64,000 nt of DNA, taken from contig MCFE01000202.1 in NCBI GenBank assembly GCA_002104905.1, forward strand, positions 68,058-132,057, given 5' to 3'. Below, in pieces: positions 7,251 through 63,770 of this stretch; position 1 is the stretch's first letter; each line of letters opens with the position of its first letter. Source of the DNA: Basidiobolus meristosporus CBS 931.73 (taxonomy: Eukaryota; Fungi; Basidiobolomycota). The position numbers were made by a program, and so were the translations under genes. The notes beneath the pieces are model-generated. The model worked only from the letters and a program-made list of their open reading frames with translations. It had not been told where the DNA came from and ran no database searches.

Positions 7251-10200
7251 ATGGGATATTATGGAAGCTTTATAGTCACCCGTAGAGTTGGCGGGGACTT
7301 CAAGACTTTTCCGATCAACAAAAAGGAGTTTCTTATCGGAAAGTAAATATGGTTTGGAGTTTCTCATGGCTGATAACGGGCATAGCAGTTGACCATTCAC
7401 CTCTAGGCAACTCACCTGCGATGTTCGTATATACTTACCTCAGATCGCCGACAACCACTGTAAAATTTCCTTCGAAAAAGAGGGTCAGGTAAGCGGCGAG
7501 TTGGACGACAACATGAGGCTGATGATGCTAATCGTCCCCACCGTTGCAGGCTACCCTTATCAATTTCAGCAAAAACGGGACCATGGTCAATGGAGAGAAG
7601 CTCGGCGAGCAGGACCGAAGAGCGCTGAATGACAAAGATATCATCACCATCCACGACCGAACCTTCCGTTTCGAGTATTCCTCTCCGAACGCGGCCAAGC
7701 CACAGCCAACCGTACATGTTTCAAAACCACTTCGCCCCATCAGCAGAACGAATGCCTCCGCCACTCCACTTAAATCATCCACACGACCATTCAATCGCAC
7801 CACCACGCCCCTCACAAATCAAGTCAAGGGACACACCAGGGCCCCTTTCACCGAGCCATCCAAAAAAAGCGTGAGGCCTATCCTGGGTACGGCCCAGAGT
7901 TACAGAGAGAGTCAAATCAAGCAAGAAGACCAGACGCAATACTCTGCGTTCTCCATGCTTAAGACTGAGCAGCCAGACATGGATGGCCTGCATATCAAAG
8001 CCGAGGATGCAATCGCCAAATGCGAAAGTCAGCTGAATACAATCAGCGACAAGTTGAACCAGTCAAGCCAGATCCTCGCCAATGCTCACGCGGCCAGTGA
8101 TCACAAGAACGTGGAGATAATCCCGTCAGTAATCAACAACATGGAAGCATGTGATGTGAAGGTAAAGACTGAGGATTCAACGGAGAGAGTCCAGGAGCCT
8201 AAGCAAGACCATATCGCTGATGCTAACGAGGCATCTCCGAAGCTTCCCAAGGCGCTGCTCCTATTGAGCAGTGCGAGTTCTAAGAAGAGAAAGTCATTGG
8301 ATACAACGTCGCTCATGCAACCTCGTTCACCTGGTCGCCGTTCCTCAAGACGGAGATCCTCACTGCTGGACCACACCAGCTTGCTAGCAATCAAGCCTGA
8401 GCAGGATCATTCGGAGCCATCGGTCACCACCACCAATGATGCCACGGAAGAGAATCCGCGTCGCAAAGTCACTTTCGGGCCCGACTTGAGCCCGGAGATT
8501 TACGACCGCACTCTGCCTCCAAATTCTCCACTCAAGCGAGGAAAGAAGACTCCCAGCGGGACCCCAGCATTATCACACAGTAAATTAAGAGACGTGATCT
8601 CCGATGCCTCGGAGCCTTTATCTGTACGTCGAGTCACATTCGGGCCAGATCTTAGTCCGGAGATATTCGACAAGGCGCTTCCACCCAATTCTCCACTGAA
8701 GAAGGGTAGAATCACCCCTTCCATCAAGCAGACCCCTCTGAGAGACTCCGTCTGCGCCAAACCCACCACGCCATCCTCCTCATTGCTAAAGAACGTCCTG
8801 AAGCAATTCCGTGCGAAAGAAAGCAGCCCAATCACATTGGATTCCAACGACGATTTTGCTGAGGGTGTTGATTTGGCCGAAGAGGCCAAGGAGTTCTTGC
8901 ACAGCATAGATCCATCGCAAGACAATCACGAGTCAGAGACGATAGAATCCAATACGGATGGCGATGAAAAACCGGTCGAGGATAGCATTCTAACCGGTAA
9001 TAATGGGTCCGAGCAATTGTCATCCGCTGAGCCTGGCAACGTAATCACCTCATCCGAGAGCCTTATCACCGTGAGTATCGAAGCGTCAGAGGATTTCGTC
9101 GAAGAAGCTGCAGATGGATTGTCCACACCAGAGAAACGAGCACCAGCGTTCTCGGCGACATTCACCTCGGACAGCATTTCTGAAGGGATTGCTATTGCGG
9201 AGCTTTTCGACACCTCAATGGTTTCGCCCGTTCACTCTTCTGACACCTCAGGCGACAGAATGGAAGTCACGGCTAGCCATGGCGACGCCGATGCTGCCAA
9301 TCTGCAGCCCGAAGAAAGCCCATCCTCGCCAGCTGGTGATCTTTCCGACTCTGAAGTCACTACATTTCCTAATGTTGAGAAGGATGAATCTGATTCGCAT
9401 ACAGATGACGACAGAGATGGTGATGATGCAAGCGGTGATCAAACGCCGAATACATCTATATCAGTAGAGCAGGATAGCGCACCCACCACTCCTCAAACCA
9501 TGCCTACTTCCGGAAGCCTATCGGAAAGTGTCAGACAAGGCCAGGAAATAGCCGAGCTTTTCGCCACCCCTCCAAGCAGGAACCTTGAAAGCCCACACTC
9601 CCCCATGTCCGTCGATTCGCCTTCGTCGACTCTTCAACTCCCCGATGTGGTCACTCCAACTCGCAAGCCGCTTACCACCACTGTGGACACTTGTGAGAGT
9701 CTCCGGGAAGGCGAGGCCATAGCCAATCTTTTCGCTACCCCGTCACCTAAAGCGTCCGAGGAGAAATTCTTCACCCCAGATTCCATCAACGCATTGACCG
9801 TAGACGCGGAATCCGTTGTTAGCCAAAGAGCGGTGGACCTTGGCCAGTCCGGCAAAACCCCATCCATGCATATGGATATGGATACTGAAAGTTTCATTGA
9901 AGGCGAAACGATCGCTAACCTACTATCTACTCCGACCCCCGGCAGTGATGCCCACCTACCAGAATCCCCTCTGGCGGCGAAGTCGACTTGTACACCTAGC
10001 TCCAACGTAACTCCTACAAGTAGCGTAGCAGAGTCTCCTCTCGCACCCTCCCCCCAAGCCTCGCTAGCCACCGAGGCTAATATAGAAGATGCTAATTTCC
10101 CCGACTTCATTGCAGGCCTGGAGGGGCTTGGCACCATTTCCGAATCGAATCAAGAAGTGGTGACCGTCAGCAAAGAGGATTCCGAGCTCGATGAGACTAT

Positions 10201-13200
10201 GATGGATATCGATTCCGAGGTGGAGAATACTAACGAGGAAGCTGAACAAGAGCCACTGGCCGTAGAGGAGTCCGGGGAAACTGCTGCCGAACTGAACGAG
10301 GAGGAAACTCCAGATGTGAGCTATGAAGCAATGGTGGAAGCAGAGGTAGAGCATATTGCAGGTCCCCTCGATCCCGAGAACGACCCTTCGGGCTCAGTCG
10401 AAGCCGGCAAACCACTTGAGGAGGGTGTTCTTCTTGATGATCCTATCAAGGACCCAACCGAAATCGTTGAACATGTCAAGGCAGTCGAGGAAAAAGATCA
10501 AGATGAAGATATGGAAGATCAGGAGGAAGTCATCAATGATTCGGAGAATGCCGATCTTAATCAAGCAAACGATGATGATGAGGAGGAGGAGGAGGAGGAG
10601 GAGGAGGAGGATGTTAGCACGTTGATATTTGAGCAAGAAGCGACTGTAGAGACTCTTCAGAATGAAGTTGCTGTCGATGTGAGCGAGAAAGAGATAGGAA
10701 CAGCACCCAACAACGAAAGTGGCGAAGAGACGGACGATAATAAGCAAATCGATGAAAATGGCGAGGAACACGGCACTGTTAACGTGCACCAAGATGAACT
10801 CGACGAAGCAGATGATGCTTTACCCGAAGAGAATTTGAGTGGTGAAGCCGATGTCGAGGCACATGACACTCTAGAGGTTGATGCTAAGGACGACGAGGCC
10901 CAGCCAGAGGCCGAACTGGATGCATATACCAACACTGACGATGCCAAGTCAGAGGACGGAAATGTCGAATCTGAAGATAAGCCAGATGAAGATCCCGACG
11001 TTGCACAGCTTGAGGTTAGCGATCATGAAGATTTTGCTTTGGACAATGCGGAGGTTGATGCCAAGGATGATGAGGCTCAATCAGAGGACGGCCTGGACGT
11101 GGATGCCAAGGTTGTTGACGCTGAGTCAGAAGACCTAAATGTCGAATCTGAAGACAAGCTAGATGAAGGCCTCAACGTCGCACAGCTTGAGGAACCTGAG
11201 GTTAGCGATCATGAAGATATGGCTACAGACAATGCAGGTGCCGAGAAACCCAGTGATGACGAAGAGATGGAGTCGGATGAAGCGAAGAGTGATGAAGCTC
11301 AGCCAGAAGTTGATATCACGGATGGCCATGTTAAACCAGAAGTGGAATCGGATGTAGAAGCAACCAACGAAAATGTTGAGCCAGAAGACCAACTGCCTGA
11401 AGACTCCCACCTCAAACAGCCAGAGGAAACCGTGGTTAGCGAGCATGATGATATGGGATTGGACAATGTGGGTGAAAAGCAACCTAGTGACAATGAAGCA
11501 GATTCCGAGGTGGATGTCGAGCCACAAGACAAATCGGAAGAAGTCTCCGAAGTTGCACTGCCAGAGGAAGCAGAAGCTAGTGACCATGAGGGCACAGAGA
11601 TCGCTGAAGCTGACGATCAACCGAACGTGAATGATGCCGAGGTTGCAACCACCCCTAAGCGCAAGGAACCCGAACAAGAAGCTTCTAGCGAAACCGAGGA
11701 GCATAGTGAGCATGATACCCCAATGAAATCCTCGCCCACCTCCAATGTGACCCTTGCCAGATCCACTAGATCCCGCCGAAGGGGTGACAGAGTTATTCAG
11801 TATCCAGAATCCAATTCGGATGGCGCTAACCAGACTCGTCCCGTAAGAGCTAGCAAACGAGTCGCTCAATCCGAGAATCAGGAGACATCCAAGCCTGCTC
11901 GCACTCGCTCAACCAGGGCAACCAGAACTAATACCGTTCCTGATGAAGATACCCAACATGAGGAAGTCGACTCCCCCATCCGTCCTCGTTCTACCCGTCA
12001 GAAATCAAAACCGCAACACGAAGTTGAGGCACCCCAACCCGAGGCTGCCATCGAGGAATCCGATCCCATAGAAGAGAAGGAGGAGCAAGAAGAGGAGGCG
12101 CCTCTCCCCAAACCACGGAAGACCACACGCAGGACCAAGAAAAGTAAGCCCGAGGAACCTAGCCACGTCGAGGCCAATGTCAGTGAAGAGCCCCAGATCA
12201 AGACTCGCGGTAAACGTACTCTCGAGGAGTCCAACGAAGAGGAACCTTCGTCGAGATCGACCAAAACCCGCTCAAAGAGATCCAGGAAGGTCGCTCAAGA
12301 AGACGAGGAGCAACCCGAGGCAGAGATTGTTCCGGAACCCCTGCCGATCACTCGCGCTTCAAAAAGAAGCAAGAGAACGGTGGAGAAAGTCGAGGCCCAG
12401 CGTGAAACCTCCGATCACGATGTCACTGATGAGGAAAAGGTCGAACCCACTGAGGGTAAGGTTGCCGATGAATCCCCAAAGGTCAAATCCGGACGTCGCA
12501 AGCGCACTCGTAAGAACGACCCTGAGCCGATGGCTTCGGATGATGAGCTTGAGTTGGAGATGAAGCACGTGACACGACGAGGAAAGCGCGCCACAGCCTC
12601 CCAAAAAGCCTCCCAGGCTGAGGAAGTAACGGACGACTCACCGGAAGATGCGGTGGTGGAGAAGAAACCCAAAACACGTAGCAAACGTGCCGTAGCCACC
12701 GTGGCCACCGTGGATGAAGCGGAGGAAGAGCCTTCCGAAGAAGTGGTGGAGCAGCCCAAGATCACCACACGTCGCGCCAATAGAACCGCGAAACCAACAG
12801 TGAAGAAAACCCGCTCCACACGTGGTACCAAACGTGCGGTCAGGGAAGAGGAACCCGCTGAGGAACCCGAAACTTCCGAGAGCAAGGAATCCGCGAGTGA
12901 GGAAGTCACGGACAGCCCTGCCCAGCACGATACCGACGAGCCCGATACCGTCGTCGAGCCACCCAAACCAAAGCGTGCATCGAAACGCACCAAGGCTCAG
13001 AAGAGCTCTACCAAGACTAGCGCCAGAAAGAGCAAGGCCGAGATCCCCCCGGAAGCTGATACGGAAGAGGGAGAGGAAGTGGAAGTGGAAGCGAAGAAGA
13101 AAGCCACGACCACACGAACCGCCAAAACCACCACTCGTTCCAAAGCCGCCAAGGCCACGAAACAAGAGGAGCCTGCTGCTGAGGTAATTCCGAAGCGCAC

Positions 13201-13393
13201 CAGAAGCACCAAAACGGGCAGTAAGCGCAAGGCTGATGCAGTCGAAGAGGAGCAGGAGGAGGAGGAGGAGGAAGCCAAGCCGATCACCCGTAAACGGGTG
13301 AAGGCCAGCGAAACCACCAAACCAGCCACTCGATCCAAAGACTCCGCAAAGATCACCACGCGCCAGACTCGCTCCAGAACTCGCAAGAACTAG
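7251..13393 (+). CDS. MKI67-like: Ki-67-like protein: N-terminal FHA, two RVxF+KiR PP1-docking motifs, ELFxTP repeats, acidic middle, basic disordered tail (about 2,000 aa)
   Basis: Exons 7251-7342, 7407-7488 and 7550-13393 give MGYYGSFIVTRRVGGDFKTFPINKKEFLIGKQLTCDVRIYLPQIADNHCKI...DIITIHDRTFRFE (Ki-67-type FHA). Also RKVTFGPDLSPEIYDRTLPPNSPLKRG, RRVTFGPDLSPEIFDKALPPNSPLKKG and four EGxxIA(E/N)L(F/L)xT(P/S) repeats. Confidence 0.75.
10870..11235 (+). repeat. Intragenic tandem duplication (about 180 bp unit) in the acidic region of the Ki-67-like gene
   Basis: EVDAKDDEAQ...NVESEDK...VAQLE...VSDHED...DNA occurs twice in tandem. Confidence 0.8.
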
Positions 13394-15032: not shown

Positions 15033-16760
15033 ATGATGGTTGCATTCACCTCACCACATCGATCCTCGAGATCAGGCACTCTGTTGTGTCTCTTGCTCGC
15101 CTTGATTTTAACGGTCAATGCTGGTGTGGTCGAATACAACCTTACCATCACCCAAGATCTACGCTCCCCTGACTGCTTCGAAAGACTAGTCGTCCTGGTG
15201 AACAACCAGCTTCCAGGCCCCGAAATCCGCGCTCGTCCTGGCGATACACTCGTTGTCAATGTGCTCAACCAGATGGATACGGATGTGGTCTCGATGCATT
15301 TCCATGGGCTCCACAACAAAGGCACGCCGTACTCGGATGGTGTCCCTCGTCTGACCCAATGGCCCATCCTCCCAGGAACCATGTATCGCTACGAGATGAA
15401 CGTGGGCGACCAGGTGGGCACCTATTTCTACCACGCCTCTACCAGTATCCACGGAATGACCGCATTCGGACCCCTCGTGATCGACGACAACCTGGGCCCC
15501 AGACTGTTCAAGTATGATGAGGAGCGTAACTTCCTTCTGAGTGATTTCTTCCACAAGGATGATGACACCATCACCACTGGATTGCTATCACCCAACTTCC
15601 ACTGGATCTTCGCCCCACAGTCGATGCTCATCAACGGTAAGAACCTTGTCGAAACCAAGTGCACATCCAAGGATGACAAGGTCTGCACGTCCTGCCAACA
15701 CGACGTCACTACTGTGGAGAGGGGAAAGACCTATCGCTTCCGCATCTACGGCTCCGCCATGGCCGCATTCTTCCGGTTCAAGATCGCTGGTCACAAGTTG
15801 ACTGTTATCGAGGTTGATGGCTCCTATGTGCAGCCCTATGTCACCGATCATATCGAGGTGAACGCTGGTCAACGCTTCTCAGTCCTAGTCACTGCTGATC
15901 AAAGCCCCGGAACCTACTATATCAAATCCGAGCCAGGATACGAATGGAAGGTCCCACCTGCTGCTGCAGGCACCCAAGCAGATGGTGTGGCCATCTTACA
16001 GTATAAGGAAGCCAAGCAGCCCGATCCTAGAGAGGTCCCAAGCAAGAACGCACTTCCACAGGTTCCAGAGCAAGAGTTCCTGTGGGAAACTGATAGATTT
16101 GTCAAGCTACCATACCCCTCCGACGCTGTGCCCAACTTCCCAAAACACTTCAACCGCGAGTTCATCCTGACCCCGACTGTAGTATTGCTGGGTGATGGCG
16201 GTGGTTTGGTCGGTGTGCCAACTAAGATGGTGATCAACAATGTCACCTACGAACACCCAAGAACCCCTCTTCTTAATGACCTGTATACTGGACAGATGTC
16301 TCGTAGCATCGACTATTCAAGGATCCCGCCCGATGGCTACGACCCTAGACGTGGCACTTATCCGATCCAACTCGGGGAAGTGATCCAAGTTGTCCTTCAA
16401 CTGACCGCTGACCCTAATGGTCGTTGCGACGTGCACCCATTCTATCTTCACGGGCACAAGCTGTTTGATCTCGGTGGTGGTAAAGGCGCGTACCCTGGAA
16501 AACTCCCAATGCTTAGAAACCCTCCGTTCCCACGTGACATCATCACTCTGTACCCTACAGCCGAGAGTCAGGGAATCCATAATGAACCACACTCACCATG
16601 CGGCTGGAGAGCATTCCGCTTCATTGCCAACAATCCAGGCACCTGGCTATTCCAATGTCGCGCCACCCCCCATGCCATCATGGGTATGGCCGCGGTATTT
16701 GAGGTCGGAGTGGACAAGCTCCCCCCTCCACCACGTTCTCTTGGTAAATTAGCATACTAG
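15033..16760 (+). CDS. Secreted three-domain multicopper-oxidase-fold protein (ascorbate oxidase/laccase-like) with a degenerate trinuclear copper site
   Basis: Signal peptide; VVLVNNQLPGPEIRARPGD; the L1-L4 positions read HFHG, YHAS, HPFYLHGH and FQCRATPHAIMGM. Intact 575-aa intronless ORF. Confidence 0.9.
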   Translation: MMVAFTSPHRSSRSGTLLCLLLALILTVNAGVVEYNLTITQDLRSPDCFERLVVLVNNQLPGPEIRARPGDTLVVNVLNQMDTDVVSMHFHGLHNKGTPYSDGVPRLTQWPILPGTMYRYEMNVGDQVGTYFYHASTSIHGMTAFGPLVIDDNLGPRLFKYDEERNFLLSDFFHKDDDTITTGLLSPNFHWIFAPQSMLINGKNLVETKCTSKDDKVCTSCQHDVTTVERGKTYRFRIYGSAMAAFFRFKIAGHKLTVIEVDGSYVQPYVTDHIEVNAGQRFSVLVTADQSPGTYYIKSEPGYEWKVPPAAAGTQADGVAILQYKEAKQPDPREVPSKNALPQVPEQEFLWETDRFVKLPYPSDAVPNFPKHFNREFILTPTVVLLGDGGGLVGVPTKMVINNVTYEHPRTPLLNDLYTGQMSRSIDYSRIPPDGYDPRRGTYPIQLGEVIQVVLQLTADPNGRCDVHPFYLHGHKLFDLGGGKGAYPGKLPMLRNPPFPRDIITLYPTAESQGIHNEPHSPCGWRAFRFIANNPGTWLFQCRATPHAIMGMAAVFEVGVDKLPPPPRSLGKLAY

Positions 16761-19123: not shown

Positions 19124-21069
19124 TCAACGTAACGGTGACAGCTGCTCCTCCTCTTCCTGCAACCCTGGGTGGTGACGGAGCTGCTCTAGCGTTTGGTGTA
19201 TCGTATGCTCGGACTCGATCGAGTGGTGTACTGACTCATGCTCCGTCGATAGACTCGCCTCGTCGGAAACGACATAGTAACTGGAATCGAGCAGCTACGC
19301 AATGAAGTTTGTGAGTCCCTTTTCTGTCAAGAAGCCAACCGAACATCGTCACTTACCTCGGGATGCCCGTGTCGGAAGTGATACGCCAGCCCGTTGGGGT
19401 TCATATAACTCTTGTCACAGCCCTCGACCGAGCAGATAAATGGCTTCTCCATCTCCTCCTCCTCAGGCCCATGCGCGTGCGTCTGATGGTACTGCAGCCC
19501 ATTGGGGTTCCGGTAGCTTTTGTCGCAACCCTCGTGTGGGCATTTGTACGGCTTTTCGATTTGATCCAGACCGCCGTGCATGCCTGAGTTGCCATGGCCG
19601 GATGTGTTTTTCGCGTGCTTGATGTGATAGGTCAGCCCGTTGATGTTCTTGTATTTCTTGTTGCAGCCGAGGAGCCCACATCTATACGGTCGGAGGGCTG
19701 GGTCTATCCGGGGGTGAGACACCTTCATATGGTAAAAAAGTCCGCTCGAATCCAGGAAGCTAGCGAGGCAATTGTCGACCCCGCAGCCATACGCCTTCCC
19801 CTCGTGCTCTCCGAACTGGAACTCTGTCGGAAGCAACGAGTCCGAGTGGGAGATGGCAACGAAGTCGGCAGTGACCATGGACTGCGAGGTGTTGAGGATA
19901 TCTTGAGTTAGCTTGCTTTCAACGGGTGCCATCAGCGCCTGCGTCAATTTCTCCTTTTCCCGGCTCTTCTGATTCATGCTTCTTTGTATCTTTCTCCACC
20001 GGTTGCGACAATGCAGACCTGGGCGTCCGGGGAAGAACTGCGAGATTTTCTGCCACTGGCTTCCCAGCTCTTCGTACTTCTCCAGCAACAGCCCGTCCTC
20101 TTCTGGTGACCATTCCGCTCGGTCGATCGCCGGATCCAAACTTTCCCTCCAGCGCTTGGCACATTGATCATCTGTACGTCCCGGGATCGCCTCGGCGATC
20201 TTACTCCATTGCCCTTGGTAGCGCTCAACCCCTTGGCGAAGCAATTCGTCCTCCTCGGGCGTCCAAGCACCTTTGCGTAGACTGGGGTCTAGTGAATGGA
20301 ACCATCTTTTTCGGCAGTTCTTGTTGGTCCGACCTGGCACACATGCAGCGATTTTCGCCCATTTCTCGGTCTTATCGCCATACAGTTGAACCGCTAACCT
20401 AAGCAGGTTATCTTCCTCCGGGGTCCAAGCACACCGTTGTCTGTCCTTCCTTTTGCAAGGAATGGTCGACGTGATCATCAGGGAAGCTTCGGATTGTGAG
20501 TGGATGGAGGAGAGGGAGCTGCCCGTAGACGGCAGGCTGACGAGGCCAGCAAGCGTCTGAAGGTTTGTGTCCAGATTAGCTAATATCGAAGGATTCATGG
20601 TTGAAAAGTCATCCGGGTGCAGCTAGCAATAGGCCCGTTATTTAGTGAGCTAGTATCTCTGAAGGCAAGTGGGGGTCGCAACTTACAGATATCTCATCAA
20701 CCTCATCTTTAATATGTGAATGCAACACACCTTGAGCAACCTCATCATGTTGCAGGTGAGATAGCTCTGAGTGCTCTGAGGTGTCGGGAGAGTGGCTCAA
20801 GACGTGGTGTTGAACAGCGATCCCTTGCTCGTCATAAGCCGAGATGATATGTTGCTCCGAAGCCTCCCGTTCAAGAGCCAAAGCCTCTTGTTCGTAAGCA
20901 GCCGCCAGCTCAGCACTGCTCGGAGAGTCTTCCGGATGATACTTCAGTAGACAAAGGAAGCGGTTAATGGCAGTGCAGAAGGGGGAAAATCAGGTTCCTG
21001 GGTTGGTCTGGAATTGTGGACATGTAGATAGCGTGGGGATATTTTGGTTTATTTCTATAGACTTACCAT
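19124..21069 (-). CDS. Three-repeat Myb plus four C2H2 zinc-finger transcription factor (4 exons)
   Basis: Three WTPEED/WSPEED...GR....C..RW Myb repeats and four C-x4-C...H-x3/4-H fingers with NGLxYH. Exons: ATG at 21069 (GTAAGT donor), about 20942-20687, about 20622-19357, and a final exon ending at 19124. Confidence 0.85.
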
Positions 21070-24120: not shown

Positions 24121-25600
24121 TTAGGCGGATGCCATGATGGCCTCAATTTCCGCAATTTCCTTGGGTGCGGTGGTAAGATTCTCAATGGAGTCCTCCTTGA
24201 TCACTACATTGTCTTCGATACGGACACCACCGACCTTGCGGAACCTGTCGAGGGTGGGGATGTCAAAGAATTTGGCGGTCTTGGGGTCCTTCAGAAAAGG
24301 CTCGATGATGGCATCACAGAAGTAGATTCCAGGCTCCACGGTAACAACCATGCCTGGCTTCAACTCACGGCGCATGCGCAAATAGCGGATACCGGGCTCG
24401 TTGATTCTTTCTACTCCCTTGGGATAGCCACCAACATCATGGGTGTCGATGCCAATGGAGTGGCCGAGCCCGTGGGGATAGAATGCTGCTGGAACATAAT
24501 GGGCAATCAATTCCTCAACGTCACCCTTGAGAATGCCGCACTTGATAAGGCCCTCGCAGGCAATGCGGCTAGCAAGACGGTGCATATCTTCCCACTGGAC
24601 ACCGGGCTTCAAGGCAGCCAGCACTTGCTTTTGCATATCCAAGACAATGCTGTAGATGGTCTTGGCATCATCAGTGTACTTACCACCAACGGGGAAGGTA
24701 CGGGTGATGTCTGAGGCATATCTGTGGTACTCGCCTCCAGCATCTACCAAAAACAATTGATTGCCATCAGGCATGTCGCAGTTGTTACGACCATAGTGCA
24801 AAGTGGCCGCGTTCTTGCTATATGCCATGATGGGGAGGTAGGATTGGCGCATCGAGCCACGACGATTGCACTCGTACTCGAACAACGCTTGAAGCTCACG
24901 CTCATTCATACCAGGCTTGATGCTCTTCATGAGACTCACATGAGCCTCGCTGGAGATCTTGCTAGAAATTCTCATGATTTCGAGCTCAAATTCCGATTTG
25001 AACATGCGTGCCTCCTGGAGTGCCTCAAGGAGCTTGCTGTCGTCGGCGCCACTTTGATATTCGCCCAACAGCGAAGTATCAGTGTTGGCCAAGACGTGCA
25101 CGCACTTTGGTGAGAGCTCTTTCACGGTGGCGGTCAAGGTGTCAGCATATCTGACCTCGTCGACGTCATATCTCTCCTTGAGCTCCTCATTGGTTTCAGG
25201 CATACCGATCCACACGATATCGTCTTCGGGGATTCGTGGGGCGAAAAGTATGGCCTTGTCGTTGCCGATGTCATAGAGGAACTCGTATCCTGGCTGTTCA
25301 ACACCGGTCATATAGAAGAAATAGGGGTCCTGATCGAAAGGCATTTCCTGTTGGAAGGTGGTTAGCACTATTTCAAAAACCTGGGTGCGCTTGTGCAAAT
25401 ACTCACAGTGTCACTGTCGAACTTGACGGTGTTGACGTGCCCCTTCAAGTAGATGACGCCAGAGTCGACACCAAGGTTTTTGGCAACCTTGCGGTTGTTG
25501 ATTTTAGAGTTATAACGGAATTGCTTAGCGTCGACCATATCAACCAAAGAAGCGGGAAGGATGTTGGTAAACCTCGGGCTGACCACGTCGTATTTATAAC
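24121..25600 (-). CDS. Xaa-Pro dipeptidase/aminopeptidase P (M24B); 5' end approximate, one intron at about 25349-25407
   Basis: DAGGEYHRYASDITRTFP, HGLGHSIGIDTHD, TVEPGIYF and GGVRIEDNV metal-binding motifs. Confidence 0.93.
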
Positions 25601-26211: not shown

Positions 26212-27081
26212 TCAACGGCGGTTACCAATTTTTGAGCGCCATGTTCGAGCTCGTTCAAAGCCATTGATTCCCAACTGATAGTCAACAAATGTTCGTTGAA
26301 TGTCACTAGAGTGATTCATAACGAATGGCCCATATTGGACAATAGGCTCCTTGATGGGTTCACCTGCGACTAGTACGAAATGGACCGAGCTTTGCTTAGT
26401 TTCTATGCTGATAGCTCCTCCTTTCTCACTGAGGGTCAACGTGTGGTGGGCTTTCCCAAGAGTGTTCTTTGCCCCGAAGTAACCCTCTCCCTCCAATACA
26501 TATAGGAAGCCTTGGTAACTTTCCGGAATAGTTTGTTCGAGTTTCGAGTTCTTCTCAACCTTGAAGTCCAGGTACATGGTTGGAGTTTTGGTGACCACCG
26601 GACTATTGATCCCAAATGAATGGCCGGCAATGACCTTGATCACTGCATTGACACCTGGTGGTGACACTTTGGGGATATCCTTATCTAGCAATTCCTGGTA
26701 TCTAGGCTCGCACATTTTATCGGCTGCGCTAAGGTTGACCCAGAGCTGGAGACCGCGACACTTGGTTTGTGGCATTTCAGCATGGACAATACCACGCCCA
26801 GCAGTCATCCACTGAAGATCGCCGGGGCCTATTTTCCCTTGGTGACCCGCGAAATCTTCATGTGCTACTATTCCCTCAAGCATGTAGGTGACGGTCTCGA
26901 AGCCTCGATGTGGATGATCCGGAAATCCAGCTGGAGGCTCGACCATGAATTCATCCAGCATCAGGAAAGGATCGAAGTTCTTGAGCTCACTTGTTCCTAT
27001 ACTCCTTCTTACTGTAGCTCCATCCCCTTCTGACTGTGCGATTGCCTTGACTTTTCTTGTAATGTATCTTTGGACGGTCAT
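26212..27081 (-). CDS. Pirin (cupin) family protein
   Basis: EGDGATVRRSIG, DPFLMLDEF, GFPDHPHRGFETVTY, LQWMTAGRGIVHAEMP, GLQLWVNL, GEPIKEPIVQYGPFVMN. Confidence 0.96.
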   Translation of the reverse strand: MTVQRYITRKVKAIAQSEGDGATVRRSIGTSELKNFDPFLMLDEFMVEPPAGFPDHPHRGFETVTYMLEGIVAHEDFAGHQGKIGPGDLQWMTAGRGIVHAEMPQTKCRGLQLWVNLSAADKMCEPRYQELLDKDIPKVSPPGVNAVIKVIAGHSFGINSPVVTKTPTMYLDFKVEKNSKLEQTIPESYQGFLYVLEGEGYFGAKNTLGKAHHTLTLSEKGGAISIETKQSSVHFVLVAGEPIKEPIVQYGPFVMNHSSDIQRTFVDYQLGINGFERARTWRSKIGNRR

Positions 27082-27521
27082 AAGAAAGTTGTTCAAATTG
27101 AAATTGTAATTGATGATGATAGCTTTCCAACCTCTCTAATTTATAGTTGGGGCTCCCGGAAGTATTATCCATATATGGATCTATTTTCCCTTGCCCTATG
27201 CAACCCGATTTGATATCAAGGAATTTATCCGTAGCGCTGCTTATTCCACGATCTAGTCACTACAAATTATCTTCTAACTGCCTGACCATATCAATAGTTT
27301 ACATCTACCAACCTTGGTGAGCAAAATGTATGGTTAGTTAGTGAGCAATGTTCGACAGAATATCTTGGTTGATGGGATATTATCGCTGATTCACGTGGAT
27401 TTTGATTACTGATGCTACACAGCAGTATTGTAAAGGTCCGGAATGGGAAATTACATTAGTGATATATCGGAAATATTTTGCTGGGGAGATTACCAATCAG
27501 TCGTTCAAGGAAATATCAAAA

Positions 27522-46886: not shown

Positions 46887-47780
46887 TTATTGCCCACGTG
46901 CAATAGTAGCGGTAATGTAGCCAGAGGGGTCGCTAATGGGTTGGAAAATGTTCATGTCCTTGCCTTCGTTGGGAAGGTTGAAGGGTTTCAGGTTGATACT
47001 GAGGTAGTGCTTGTTCGGGAGTGCATAGCTGATCTCGCGAACATCCACATTCTGAACCAACACCTTCTCACCCATCTGGTACATGGTGGCTTGCACCGAG
47101 GCGGAGTCGTCAGTGGCAAAGGTGCTGAGGGTGATCTCACGAACACTGTTGGCAATCTCGTCGAATGGAATCTCTTCGATCTTGGACTTCTCGAGGTTGT
47201 AGGTCCACTTGGCATCGACACTAGTGGAGAAGATTCGGTCAGTGGCGTCTTGAAGGGTAGTGTACTCGCAGCGGTGGAAGTTGGTGAAGGCAGAACCAGT
47301 GGACTTCAACACAAGGAGATCCTTGAGGCGAGACTCAATGGACACCTTTCCATCCCGAGAGACTGTCATCTCGACACGTCTAGTCTCATCGCCATCACGG
47401 AGGAAGGAGTGAGGGTGGAGTTGGCCATCGATCTCAACACGGGTCCAGCGGTGTTGGATGAGCTTGATGAAGACATCATCGACGTGGGAGTATCTGTTGA
47501 TGAAGTGTTGGCCAATCTCGTAACCAAAGCGCTCGATGGTCTGGACATTCTCAGACTTCTTGGCAAGGACGTAGAGGGTGTTCTTGACAGTGTCAGTTGG
47601 GACAACAACAGAGTTGTCAGCCTCGGTGTAGGAGGTCTCGAACTTGCCATCGAGGAGGACTTGAGCAGTGAGCTCGACAACATCATGCCAGTTCTTGGTG
47701 TGGCGGATGACCTTGGTGATGCGAACCTTGGTCTTGCCGTAGGCTTGCTTCTTTAGGTAGGCATTGGAGGTGTTGGCCAT
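46887..47780 (-). CDS. UOX: Uricase (urate oxidase), paralog 1
   Basis: YGK, DNSVVVPTDTVKNT, LLVLKSTGSAFTNFHRCEYTTLQDATDR, SASVQATMY, LPNKHY. Confidence 0.97.
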   Translation of the reverse strand: MANTSNAYLKKQAYGKTKVRITKVIRHTKNWHDVVELTAQVLLDGKFETSYTEADNSVVVPTDTVKNTLYVLAKKSENVQTIERFGYEIGQHFINRYSHVDDVFIKLIQHRWTRVEIDGQLHPHSFLRDGDETRRVEMTVSRDGKVSIESRLKDLLVLKSTGSAFTNFHRCEYTTLQDATDRIFSTSVDAKWTYNLEKSKIEEIPFDEIANSVREITLSTFATDDSASVQATMYQMGEKVLVQNVDVREISYALPNKHYLSINLKPFNLPNEGKDMNIFQPISDPSGYITATIARGQ

Positions 47781-48261
47781 TTTGTGGATGGGTGTTTGGC
47801 TAATGCTCTGTGTGAAATAGTGATGAGGGTTTCTCCCGATTATATAGTACATAGTTGGCTTGCATTAGCATAATGCTGGGTCGGTTCTCTGGTAGTCTCG
47901 GCCTTTGTTCGCACTTGTCCTCCTATCGTCGAAGGGTACATCAAGTTGCCACCCAACATAGATATTCTCAACGATTGAGATCTACTCCACATCCTTTAAT
48001 TTCGCTCCTATCACAGATGAGCTGTGTGACATAAACTGCCGTGTCGCCAGTCCAATAAGTCAAATCTGATCTATTCAGCTGGCATAACTAGCTACTGATC
48101 TAAGTCTAGACTCAGATTTTGGGAGCTGGACTAAAGGTGACTAGAATATGGTCTTAGCGCCAGTCCGAAGCTATACGTGTGGAGATGGAAGCAAATACCG
48201 CTGCTCGTATATAAAGTGGTACTAGGTCGTAGATAGTAGTAATTATCTACTATCTTACAAA

Positions 48262-49152
48262 ATGTCCGGAGCAGCTGAGCTGAAGCGTCAAGCCTATGGC
48301 AAGGCCAAGGTCAGAGTCACCAAGGCTATCCGTCACACCGCCCAATATAACGACATTGTCGAGCTCACCTGCCAAGTGCTCCTTGAGGGTGACTTCAAAG
48401 AGGCCTACACCAAGGCTGACAACAGCATGGTTGTCCCCACTGACACCATCAAGAACACTTGCTACGTTATTGCCAAGAAGTCCGACCACGTCCAGACCAT
48501 CGAGCGCTATGCTTACGAGCTTGGCAAGCACTTTGTTGACAAGTACTCCCACGTCACCCATGCCAGTGTCCACATTGTCCAACAACGTTGGGCCAGAATC
48601 AATGTCAATGGTGAGCCGCATCCTCACTCCTTCTACCGTGATGGCAGTGAGACCAGAGAGACCTGGGTTACTGTTGCTGCTGACAGAGTGAGCATCAAAT
48701 CGGGATTGGAAGGGCTGCTTGTGTTGAAGACCACCGGCTCCTCCTTCACCAACTTCCATCTCTGCGAGAACACCACCCTTCAGGATGCCGATGACCGAAT
48801 CTTCTCCACCACTGTCAAGGCCCACTACAACATCGACACCTCAATCGGTGTCGAGAACGTTCCATTTGACCGCATCTTTGAAGGAGTGCGCAAGACCACC
48901 CTGGATGTGTTCGCTCACGATGACTCTGCCTCCGTTCAGGCCACCATGTACCGTATGGCCGAGTTAATCTTGAGGCGGTTCCCTGAAGTCCAGGATGTGT
49001 ACTACGCACTGCCCAACAGCCACCACTTTACTACCAACCTTGCCCCCTTCAATCTACCCAATGCTGGCCAGGAGATGACGATTTTCTCGCCAGTGACTGA
49101 CTTCTCTGGATACATCACTGCCACCATTGGTCGTTGTGGTAACAAATTTTAA
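48262..49152 (+). CDS. UOX: Uricase-like protein, paralog 2 (divergent active-site neighbours)
   Basis: YGK, DNSMVVPTDTIKNT, LLVLKTTGSSFTNF, SASVQATMY, LPNSHH; ends in NKF. Confidence 0.93.
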   Translation: MSGAAELKRQAYGKAKVRVTKAIRHTAQYNDIVELTCQVLLEGDFKEAYTKADNSMVVPTDTIKNTCYVIAKKSDHVQTIERYAYELGKHFVDKYSHVTHASVHIVQQRWARINVNGEPHPHSFYRDGSETRETWVTVAADRVSIKSGLEGLLVLKTTGSSFTNFHLCENTTLQDADDRIFSTTVKAHYNIDTSIGVENVPFDRIFEGVRKTTLDVFAHDDSASVQATMYRMAELILRRFPEVQDVYYALPNSHHFTTNLAPFNLPNAGQEMTIFSPVTDFSGYITATIGRCGNKF

Positions 49153-62696: not shown

Positions 62697-63770
62697 TTAG
62701 GGTTAGGGGGGGAGACAGTCACCAACAGGTGAAATCTTTATTTCAGTTGAAACAAAGAAGCCAGCGCTACTGTTGTAGCTTTGATACAAGAGTGTGTAGC
62801 TGAGGGGAATTTGTAGGTAAGTTAATAAGAAGTGATGATAGCTCTTCAGTGCTCAAGACACTGTTCAGTGGGAAGGGGGGTAGCAAGAGAGGTAAGAATG
62901 ACTTGTGAACAACATTAATGAGGGGAATGTGATAAGGATTGATATTCATCATAAATGGAGTGTGCTGCTGCAGATATTGCTGCCAAAGGTCTGTCAAGTA
63001 CTTCAGGTAGGCCAGCTTGGGTTTTTCTGACTGCAGAATAAAGTGAGCAAACTTCTTGACTTCAGGATCTCCAAGTATAGTTCTCCAGCAGGAGCCAGGT
63101 GTTGTGTGGTGTGTTCTCTTCCAGGCCTTAATCAGTGGGTTGTTGCAGTTGTGAAGTCTGAGGTATAATCTGGTTCTAAGGTAGAGAAGTCTGATCTTAT
63201 AGGGCATAAACCCAAAAGCACCAAGAATAGCATGTCTGTAGGGGCATTCAGGCAAATGAGGCACCAAGGAGGTAATGCACCATACTGCAAACTTGTCAAG
63301 CTTAGTGCAGTCTCTAGAAGTAAGAGAGAGAAGTGGTAAGCCAAATTCTAGGACAGGGAAGACAAACTGCTTGAGTAGAAGGAGGCAGCTGGGAGCTGAA
63401 GTTGTAGGAGGAGTAACAGCCAACAGCTTGTGGAGTGCCTGTCTTGCAAGGATAATTCTCATCTTCAGGTGTGCTCCAGAGTCTAGTCCAGTAGGAAGGA
63501 AAGGAAAGCCAAGATATGTAGCAGAAACCTGAGCAGGTAGAGTGGAGTTCTCCAAGATGATGGGAGAGCCCAAAGGTACTGTCTTTGCAATGGAAAGCTG
63601 GAGATTATTCTTCTGCAGATACTGGTGGATGGTCTGCGAGTCTTGTTGCACATTGGAGTAGGATATTCTGATGTCATCAGCAAAGAGAGTAACCAGGCAG
63701 TCAGCTGAGAGTCTTGGGAAGTCATTCAGGAAGATGGCAAACAGTATAGGACCAAGCACAGAGCCTTGAA
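62697..63770 (-). mobile_element. Terminal telomeric LINE family A, 5'-truncated at QGS and capped by the telomere
   Basis: Open 330-codon frame (Q)GSVLGPILFAIFLND...LFADD...LSIAKT...YLG...LEFG to KLQQ-stop; 60-nt 3' UTR ending in CCCCCCCTAACCCTAA; 5' end joined to (CCCTAA)n. Confidence 0.95.

Follow-up and report, generated by a model that had tools for sequence, protein, structure and literature searches.

Ki-67, which in humans coats dividing chromosomes, has long been regarded as a vertebrate protein. A three-exon gene in the fungus Basidiobolus meristosporus CBS 931.73 raises the question of whether an intact member of the Ki-67/RepoMan family exists outside animals and, if so, which of the family's features it carries. 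The gene occupies positions 7251-13393 on the forward strand of the window, by which we mean the 64,000-nucleotide stretch of contig MCFE01000202.1 that was analyzed. On the basis of the evidence set out below, we put the probability that it is the B. meristosporus member of this family at roughly 85%.

Gene model and gene status

The spliced exons (7251-7342, 7407-7488, and 7550-13393) provide an intact reading frame of 6018 nt that encodes a predicted product of 2005 aa and 220 kDa. The coordinates given in a first-pass annotation of this DNA were correct, with an ATG at 7251 and a TAG ending at 13393. The splicing model is based on canonical sites and on the GenBank model of Basidiobolus ranarum; the spliced N-terminus agrees with the B. 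ranarum protein in GenBank, and the first two exons of that orthologue are likewise 92 nt and 82 nt. The features of the 5' part of the gene are as follows.

7251-7342, forward strand: exon 1, 92 nt, holding the ATG together with the FHA domain's first 30 2/3 codons; GT donor at 7343
7343-7406, forward strand: intron 1, 64 nt, GT..AG, phase 2, from the splice-site check
7407-7488, forward strand: exon 2, 82 nt, FHA core (CDVRIYLPQIADNHCKISFEKEGQ)
7489-7549, forward strand: intron 2, 61 nt, GT..AG, phase 0
7550-13393, forward strand: exon 3, 5844 nt, carrying what remains of the FHA domain, both PP1 modules, every disordered region, and the TAG stop
7251-7690, forward strand: FHA domain of the Ki-67 type, aa 1-105, across both introns (Pfam FHA)

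Were this a decaying or silent gene close to a chromosome end, its frame of 6018 nt would not be expected to be intact and its splice sites canonical, nor would the exon layout be kept and the FHA domain and PP1 modules be under strong amino-acid constraint relative to B. ranarum; we regard such a status as highly improbable. The dN values between the two species were 0.086 for the FHA domain, 0.206 for the PP1 modules, and 0.7-0.78 for the disordered regions, and they are read as contrasts in dN only, the synonymous sites being saturated and dN/dS hence not given. Sequence conserved between the two Basidiobolus species includes the FHA domain, both PP1 modules, and a short motif present in several copies. 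An MCB-like ACGCG just 5' of the ATG was considered as a candidate element and rejected, as its single occurrence is not above chance.

FHA domain, PP1-docking modules, and family membership

The N-terminal domain had been described as an FHA domain of the Ki-67 kind, and both sequence and fold bear this out. It is 44% identical to the FHA domain of human Ki-67 over 93 residues (Z=33, with 0 of 2000 shuffles scoring as high) and about 81-84% identical to that of B. ranarum. When the B. ranarum orthologue was used as a phmmer query, the best PDB sequence match was the Ki-67 FHA domain with 56 bits, followed by CHFR with 27 bits. An AF2 model of the B. ranarum FHA domain (pLDDT 89.9) gave the Ki-67 structures 1R21/2AFF as its top Foldseek matches, with an rmsd of 1.4-1.5 Å. 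The FHA phylogeny that had been suggested as a check was built from an alignment of 113 columns and is poorly resolved; it placed the Basidiobolus pair within a 115-row group of N-terminal FHA proteins from fungi and animals, separate from bacterial and internal FHA domains, in agreement with the claim but with a modest SH-aLRT support of only 82. The canonical FHA binding residues are G-R, S-x-x-H, and N, with the role stated for them in preprint 10.64898/2026.06.18.733134. In both Basidiobolus species the phosphothreonine-binding GR is replaced by GK; at SxxH, B. meristosporus has ADNH and B. ranarum SDVQ, and NG is kept in B. meristosporus. With GK and ADNH/SDVQ at these positions, phosphopeptide binding may be weakened or altered in Basidiobolus.

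Downstream of the FHA domain lie two PP1-docking modules and two neighboring segments.

8273-8371, forward strand: basic stretch (KKRK ... RRSSRRRSS), aa 300-332, conserved in B. ranarum
8456-8572, forward strand: PP1-docking module 1, aa 361-399, RRKVTF - SPEIY - DRTLPPNSPLKRG (Pfam PP1_bind)
8621-8734, forward strand: PP1-docking module 2, aa 416-453, RRVTF - SPEIF - DKALPPNSPLKKG (second PP1_bind stretch)
8738-8845, forward strand: segment conserved downstream of the PP1 modules, aa 455-490, SSLLKNVLKQFRAKESSPITLD

A Pfam profile search, which had also been proposed, found both FHA and PP1_bind (PF15276), the latter scoring 82.8 bits (cutoff 27; E=2e-23) in two stretches of the protein, such that the RVxF motif and KiR-SLiM claimed for this gene are present twice. 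The two modules stand in tandem and each is complete, comprising RVxF, a hydrophobic pair, and the KiR-SLiM. Modules 1 and 2 are each 57% identical to mammalian Ki-67 (Z=15.9 and 17.8, respectively) in alignments that span 35-37 residues and include the KiR-SLiM. The consensus of this motif, FDxxLP(P/A)N(T/S)PL(R/K)(R/K)Gx(T/S)P, has been reported solely from Ki-67 and RepoMan (PMC5005033). Module 2 is an exact fit to the consensus through the Gly, Y replaces F in the KiR core of module 1, and both modules contain one additional residue ahead of the final TP. Among the fungal proteins examined, the doubled module looks specific to Basidiobolus. The basic stretch at aa 300-332 is a putative NLS-like element with kinase-site-like motifs. 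The segment at aa 455-490 is 67% identical to B. ranarum, with a dN of 0.205 versus 0.7-0.78 in the remaining disordered chain.

An unrelated FHA protein could, in principle, have acquired a PP1-docking motif by convergence and not be a Ki-67 homologue at all, given that FHA domains are widespread, that short linear motifs can arise anew, and that the FHA tree has the low resolution and support noted above. Convergence of this sort would have to account for a B. ranarum FHA domain that scores twice as high on Ki-67 as on any other solved FHA domain, for a PP1 match that spans 35-37 residues at 57% identity and includes an element reported from Ki-67 and RepoMan only (PMC5005033), and for the recurrence of the identical two-domain order across fungi and animals. 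We consider it very unlikely and retain membership in the Ki-67/RepoMan family as the preferred reading.

Relatives with both FHA and PP1_bind domains according to Pfam were found in Basidiobolus, Mortierellaceae, Endogonales, Bifiguratus, and chytrids, and FHA-type relatives with no detected KiR motif were found in Kickxellales, Pneumocystis, the homoscleromorph sponges Corticium and Oscarella, and the choanoflagellate Mylnosiga. The proposal that an ancestral opisthokont Ki-67/RepoMan gene was retained here is supported. A metagenomic protein of 3365 aa with 23 matched stretches was discarded as an unrelated repetitive protein that was matched via LP..L...GTP strings. Because Ki-67 and RepoMan separated later, in vertebrates, the best reading of the B. 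meristosporus protein makes it co-orthologous to both. The novelty that had been attached to a fungal Ki-67 did not survive: the name "antigen identified by monoclonal antibody Ki-67" is already given in GenBank to proteins of B. ranarum, Mortierella, Podila, and Coemansia, and fungal Ki-67-like proteins are already described in a preprint of June 2026 (10.64898/2026.06.18.733134). Finding an intact member in a fungus, with both diagnostic domains, supports placing the origin of the family before fungi and animals diverged, a point made by those same sources; what this locus adds is that the complete KiR-SLiM dock, beyond a bare RVxF match, is conserved in fungi and duplicated in this gene.

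Repeated motif, acidic block, and C-terminal tail

The remainder of the protein is a long chain whose disorder was judged from composition, with the following features.

9164-9220, forward strand: motif copy 1, SISEGIAIAELFDTS
9518-9574, forward strand: motif copy 2, SVRQGQEIAELFATP
9689-9745, forward strand: motif copy 3, SLREGEAIANLFATP, orthologous to one B. ranarum copy
9881-9937, forward strand: motif copy 4, SFIEGETIANLLSTP, orthologous to one B. ranarum copy
10076-11695, forward strand: polyacidic block, aa 901-1440 (about 540 aa), net charge -179, from the charge profile
11696-13390, forward strand: C-terminal tail, aa 1441-2005, in which basic (TRSxR/KRSKR) and acidic blocks alternate, ending TRQTRSRTRKN

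Four repeats resembling the Ki-67 repeat core had been claimed for this region. The four motifs are real, as four copies of IA[EN]L[FL]xTP arose by chance in 0 of 5000 shuffles and the motif is conserved in B. ranarum, with two copies there versus four in B. meristosporus. Their likeness to the Ki-67 core did not exceed that of shuffled sequence, and the common ground is just hydrophobic-x-x-L-F-x-T-P. In the B. meristosporus protein, Pfam K167R gave no match at E<=10, a PSSM of the vertebrate-derived repeat core reached a maximum of 3.6 (p=0.51 with block shuffles), and HMMs made from vertebrate, vertebrate plus fungal, and fungal (chytrid) repeat copies yielded nothing above shuffles. The chytrid homologues possess significant tandem Ki-67-type repeat cores in units of 18-20 aa (NLVGVREMLKTP in Borealophlyctis and MHGVKELFQQPK in Gorgonomyces), which suggest that the Ki-67 repeat is much older than usually stated. 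We tentatively raise the idea, at somewhat less than even odds, that the hydrophobic-A-x-L-F-x-T-P motifs of Basidiobolus are degenerate versions of the core found in Ki-67 repeats, canonical copies of which survive in chytrids. If so, the entire arrangement of FHA domain, PP1 dock, repeats, and basic tail would already have existed in the ancestor that fungi and animals last shared. The repeat core would in that case be a short linear motif of ancient origin whose ligand has been conserved, and the doubled PP1 dock and the anionic brush would be Basidiobolus-specific additions.

The description of a long S/T-P-rich chain with charge blocks was confirmed: the protein contains 45 S/T-P sites, 10 of them of full CDK consensus, and residues 451-1440 sum to a net charge of -237, followed by a tail of mixed to basic character. 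An overall basic character was not found, the whole B. meristosporus protein being strongly acidic with a pI of 4.5 and a net charge of -216. The polyacidic block consists of degenerate acidic repeats of 60-75 aa, each closing in S[DE]H[ED], and these repeats are weak (about 30% identity by segment BLAST). Together with the four-copy motif they make up two internal repeat families, self-BLAST of the entire protein gave no matches, and TRF detected no DNA-level tandem repeats in the gene beyond short GAG runs. The B. ranarum orthologue, with 1430 aa, a net charge of +26, and a pI of 9.3, is without a comparable acidic block. The C-terminal tail is 30% identical to that of B. ranarum, and jackhmmer searches against 160 collected proteins, begun from the tail, from the middle, and from the linker between FHA and PP1, recovered B. 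ranarum alone, and with the tail alone. Arginine-rich extreme C-termini of a similar kind occur in fungal and vertebrate homologues. The tail is a candidate chromatin anchor; it has no detectable relative outside Basidiobolus, and this role is therefore drawn from composition only. The locus indicates that an extreme polyanion with a basic tail is possible in the family, a finding of relevance to the charged-brush model of how chromosomes are coated.

Proposed function and comparison with known systems

We propose that the protein would serve as a chromatin-tethered scaffold, with its blocky basic C-terminal tail on chromatin, as the C-terminus is in the brush model (reviewed in PMC8354752). 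The strongly acidic middle (net charge about -240) would project from the surface as a charged brush, and the N-terminal part would recruit one or two PP1 catalytic subunits along with a phosphoprotein partner of the FHA domain. PP1 docking would probably be switched by mitotic kinases; the Thr of RVTF lies in an Aurora-type context (K/R-x-T-F), and S-P sites are present within both PP1 modules, including the full CDK consensus SPLK. Like Ki-67 and RepoMan in animal cells, the protein may work at the periphery of chromosomes and in dephosphorylation at mitotic exit.

Strong constraint is confined to the FHA domain, both PP1 modules, and short motifs, and nothing in the shorter, positively charged B. 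ranarum protein corresponds to the acidic block. These observations would also fit a RepoMan-like PP1-targeting subunit that functions in mitotic-exit dephosphorylation only, with no coating or separating role and with an acidic expansion that is functionless lineage-specific drift. In line with that alternative, CDCA2 proteins were the best non-fungal matches via PP1_bind in a word-index search that did not return the B. meristosporus protein itself, and an elephant-shark FHA-domain protein, named CDCA2 in an older version of its record, carries both an FHA domain and the KiR motif. The N-terminal FHA domain, very large disordered chain, and blocky tail nevertheless constitute the layout of Ki-67, whereas RepoMan as described is without an FHA domain. 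Moreover, the two roles are compatible, Ki-67 itself recruiting PP1 (PMC4032110). A function restricted to PP1 targeting is thus a serious but unlikely alternative, and the scaffold with a charged brush remains the interpretation we prefer.

Basidiobolus nuclei are very large, and these giant nuclei, with an envelope that fragments in mitosis, make this a practical fungus in which to ask about the ancestral function of the family. In mitotic Basidiobolus the nuclear content is bounded by membrane fragments only (PMC6492006), consistent with the earlier suggestion that the lineage may open its nuclear envelope; the link drawn from there to retention of Ki-67 is loose.

In comparison to vertebrate Ki-67 (MKI67), the B. 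meristosporus protein has an N-terminal FHA domain of the same subtype with a PP1 dock (RVxF plus KiR-SLiM) downstream, is likewise a very large protein whose S/T-P-rich, low-complexity chain is encoded in one exon, and also has repeats within the chain, charge blocks that alternate, and an extreme C-terminus rich in arginine. It differs in possessing two PP1 modules rather than one, in the substitution of Arg by Lys and Ser by Ala at canonical phosphothreonine-binding residues of its FHA domain, and in having no detectable K167R/FKELF repeat homology or LR domain similarity. Most Ki-67 proteins are highly basic, whereas this one is strongly negative. With RepoMan (CDCA2) it has the PP1-docking domain PF15276 in common, but RepoMan as described is smaller as well as lacking the FHA domain, and the lineage of the B. 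meristosporus protein is older than the Ki-67/RepoMan split. The fungal Ki-67-like proteins from GenBank and preprint 10.64898/2026.06.18.733134 (B. ranarum, Mortierella, Podila, and Coemansia; Malassezia, Mycoemilia, and Paramicrosporidium) belong to the same family, and an acidic pI (4.7-5.3) is likewise seen in most of the fungal members that were examined. The B. ranarum orthologue has the identical exon layout and both PP1 modules, and the acidic expansion makes the B. meristosporus protein 575 aa longer. Drosophila CG42232, described in the same preprint, is similarly negatively charged, with an FHA domain at the N-terminus and disorder throughout the rest; its PP1 motif is reported as a bare RVxF match at the C-terminus, whereas the fungal protein has a complete KiR-SLiM adjoining the FHA domain.

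Gene structure and FHA domain

The interval proposed in the first-pass annotation as a Ki-67-like gene, 7251-13393 (+), was confirmed to hold a single gene of three exons, and both of its introns (64 and 61 nt) are bounded by GT..AG.

Predicted gene model of the Ki-67-like gene
7251-7342, + strand, exon 1
7407-7488, + strand, exon 2
7550-13393, + strand, exon 3

The predicted product has 2005 aa (~220 kDa, pI 4.5), and the closest public relative found was a B. ranarum protein. The splicing model is supported because the B. ranarum gene (locus L001, 654-5082) has the same layout, with first exons of 92 and 82 nt ahead of a single large one, and because the GenBank B. ranarum protein has nearly identical N-terminal residues. 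No gene order was common to the window and the B. ranarum locus, where the neighbors are HIG_1_N, an aminotransferase, and UNC-50; the window neighbors are a multicopper oxidase (15033-16757, +), an M24 aminopeptidase P (24124-25398, -), and a pirin (26215-27096, -). The window also contains two uricase genes (46890-47852, -, and 48262-49149, +; Pfam Uricase E = 6e-69 and 8e-64) lying back to back on opposite strands with ~400 bp between them, an ORF (19330-20598, -) whose single 423-aa product has both C2H2 zinc fingers and three Myb repeats, and a reverse-transcriptase fragment (62770-63759, -) close to its right end.

Residues 1-105 of the window protein aligned with the human Ki-67 FHA construct at 41 of 93 identical positions (44%), and the score was 33 standard deviations over shuffles. 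The FHA domain of the B. ranarum orthologue (81% identity to the window FHA over 112 columns) was used in its place for the PDB sequence search, AlphaFold2 modeling, and Foldseek. Among all PDB sequences, its two top matches were the Ki-67 FHA entries 2AFF and 1R21 (56 bits, E = 3e-14), with CHFR the next family at 27 bits. Its model (mean pLDDT 89.9) ranked 1R21 and 2AFF first in Foldseek (rmsd 1.4-1.5 Å, identity 36-37%), and the remaining FHA structures were 14-23% identical. These matches uphold the Ki-67-like FHA recognized at first reading. In a maximum likelihood tree of 140 FHA domains, the Basidiobolus pair fell within a 115-member group of N-terminal FHA proteins of animals and fungi, with bacterial and internal FHA domains outside, at an SH-aLRT of 82 on a tree of few columns and poor resolution. 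At the phosphothreonine-binding residues (G-R, S-x-x-H, and N; preprint 10.64898/2026.06.18.733134), the G-R position is GK in both Basidiobolus species, and the SxxH position is ADNH in the window protein and SDVQ in B. ranarum; most other fungal homologues compared retain GR and SxxH. The phosphothreonine-reader function of the window FHA may be weakened or retuned.

PP1-docking modules and sequence repeats

The Pfam PP1_bind profile (PF15276) scored 82.8 bits on the window protein (cutoff 27) and matched two stretches.

Pfam PP1_bind matches
8456-8572, + strand, PP1 module 1 (aa 361-399)
8621-8734, + strand, PP1 module 2 (aa 416-453)

Identity to the mammalian Ki-67 segment is 57% for each module (Z = 16-18), so that the RVxF and KiR-SLiM reported earlier are present in two copies. 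Kumar et al. (PMC5005033) found the KiR-SLiM consensus, FDxxLP(P/A)N(T/S)PL(R/K)(R/K)Gx(T/S)P, in Ki-67 and RepoMan only; module 2 fits it exactly up to and including the Gly, and module 1 has Tyr in place of Phe. Both modules also occur in the B. ranarum protein, and the duplication is therefore older than the split of the two species. Among the 161 collected proteins, two KiR cores were found only in the Basidiobolus proteins and one fish CDCA2 (RepoMan). These comparisons show that the predicted PP1 dock is duplicated and that short motifs are conserved. The Thr of RVTF lies in a K/R-x-T-F context and each module contains S-P sites, one of them a full SPLK consensus, which suggests that mitotic kinases could regulate docking. 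Directly after module 2, a 36-residue segment, SSLLKNVLKQFRAKESSPITLD (8738-8845), is conserved within the Basidiobolus pair to the same degree as the modules.

Farther along the chain, the motif S-x-x-[EQ]-G-x-x-I-A-[EN]-L-[FL]-x-T-[PS] was found four times, near the positions where the first-pass annotation had placed Ki-67-like repeats; none of 5000 shuffles reached four core matches.

Copies of the motif (pattern matches)
9164-9220, + strand, copy 1
9518-9574, + strand, copy 2
9689-9745, + strand, copy 3, aligned with a B. ranarum copy
9881-9937, + strand, copy 4, aligned with a B. ranarum copy

Two B. ranarum copies are the aligned counterparts of copies 3 and 4, in a region that is otherwise 35% identical, so the motif is under selection. 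The likeness to the Ki-67 repeat core did not hold up. A position matrix of 61 vertebrate repeat cores (consensus roughly P-[VLM]-E-D-L-x-G-hydrophobic-K-[ER]-L-[FL]-x-T-P-K) gave a best score of 3.6 on the window protein, a value that half of the block shuffles reached; true copies score at least 29. HMMs of vertebrate copies, chytrid copies, or both gave no window-protein match above shuffles, and Pfam K167R did not match the protein. As a Ki-67 repeat the motif was rejected, scoring no better than shuffled sequence, an outcome named beforehand as refuting. The two share a skeleton of hydrophobic residues at -9 and -3, an acidic residue at -7, and L-F-x-T-P, and descent of the motif from the repeat core is possible but unproven.

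Two chytrid homologues gave significant scores on this vertebrate-derived matrix. About nine tandem 20-aa units (..NLVGVREMLKTP..) lie at aa 690-860 of the Borealophlyctis nickersoniae protein, with a best score of 19.2 (attained by 0 of 2000 shuffles), and the Gorgonomyces haynaldii protein has tandem 18-aa units (TPKMHGVKELFQQPK; core MHGVKELFQQPK) at aa 640-800, with a best score of 18.5 (p = 0.0005); in control six-frame ORFs of the 64-kb window, 1 of 33,833 sequence windows scored at least 12. Both proteins match Pfam FHA and PP1_bind, and the complete three-part Ki-67 layout is therefore present in fungi. In Basidiobolus the repeat would survive in no more than degenerate form. The preprint (10.64898/2026.06.18.733134) calls homology beyond the FHA domain too low to recognize and makes no mention of the chytrid repeat motif.

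Charge and divergence along the chain

The S/T-P-rich chain with charge blocks described in the first-pass annotation was evident: residues 451-900 carry 25 S/T-P sites and a net charge of -58, residues 901-1440, which hold degenerate acidic repeats of 60-75 aa with S[DE]H[ED] at their ends, a net charge of -179, and in the tail (aa 1441-2005) TRSxR/KRSKR patches alternate with acidic patches up to the last residues, TRQTRSRTRKN. Identity between this tail and that of B. ranarum is 30%, and no other relatives of the former were detectable among the collected proteins; arginine-rich extreme C-termini (e.g., KTRSSKRTKR, RSTRSSRK, and IRTRSRR) also occur in several fungal and vertebrate homologues. 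Because the B. ranarum orthologue lacks the acidic excess (net +26, pI 9.3), the acidic block is either a recent B. meristosporus expansion or a B. ranarum loss; the other fungal members examined are mostly acidic (pI 4.7-5.3). Synonymous sites of the Basidiobolus gene pair are saturated. Non-synonymous divergence is lowest in the FHA (0.086), stands at 0.206 in the PP1 modules and 0.205 in the 43 aligned codons that follow, and reaches 0.7-0.78 in the rest of the chain.

Family distribution and proposed role

An exhaustive HMMER search with B. ranarum residues 1-480 returned 441 proteins at E ≤ 0.001, 76 of them at E ≤ 1e-10. Among the matches looked up, an FHA together with a KiR motif or PP1_bind was found in Jimgerdemannia, Bifiguratus, Mortierella, Podila, Haplosporangium, Entomortierella, Chytriomyces, Cladochytrium, Borealophlyctis, Gorgonomyces, and the elephant shark. 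Pattern searches found no KiR motif in the FHA-type relatives of the fungi Coemansia, Linderina, and Pneumocystis, the homoscleromorph sponges Corticium and Oscarella, the choanoflagellate Mylnosiga, or a tapeworm, an isopod, and a spider. The elephant-shark (Callorhinchus milii) protein XP_007909958, which an older NCBI record version named cell division cycle-associated protein 2 (RepoMan), joins an N-terminal Ki-67-type FHA to a KiR motif and hints that RepoMan lost its FHA after duplication.

Ki-67 was still assigned to vertebrates in a 2021 review (PMC8354752). In GenBank, "antigen identified by monoclonal antibody Ki-67" is already the name of the B. ranarum, Mortierella, Podila, Haplosporangium, Entomortierella, and Coemansia proteins. 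The June 2026 preprint (10.64898/2026.06.18.733134) covers Ki-67-like proteins across non-vertebrates, those of the fungi Malassezia, Mycoemilia, and Paramicrosporidium among them, and notes that some members carry two PP1 motifs and that one from Drosophila is negatively charged; Basidiobolus is absent from it. The novelty first claimed is thereby lost, and the window locus adds a member to an already known family. The proposed tie to nuclear envelope breakdown fits the description of Basidiobolus by Adl et al. (PMC6492006), in which the nuclei are unusually large and their content is enclosed during mitosis by no more than membrane fragments, but many other fungal lineages have the family, and the link to open mitosis is weak.

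On its two diagnostic domains, the window protein almost certainly belongs to the Ki-67/RepoMan family, and we give the overall explanation, in which membership weighs most, a probability of roughly 0.85. The functional picture as a whole stands at nearly even odds. The outer end would bring in one or two PP1 molecules and an FHA ligand, with PP1 docking controlled by mitotic phosphorylation; the middle of the protein would form an anionic brush; and the basic tail would tether it to chromatin, by analogy with the LR domain of Ki-67.
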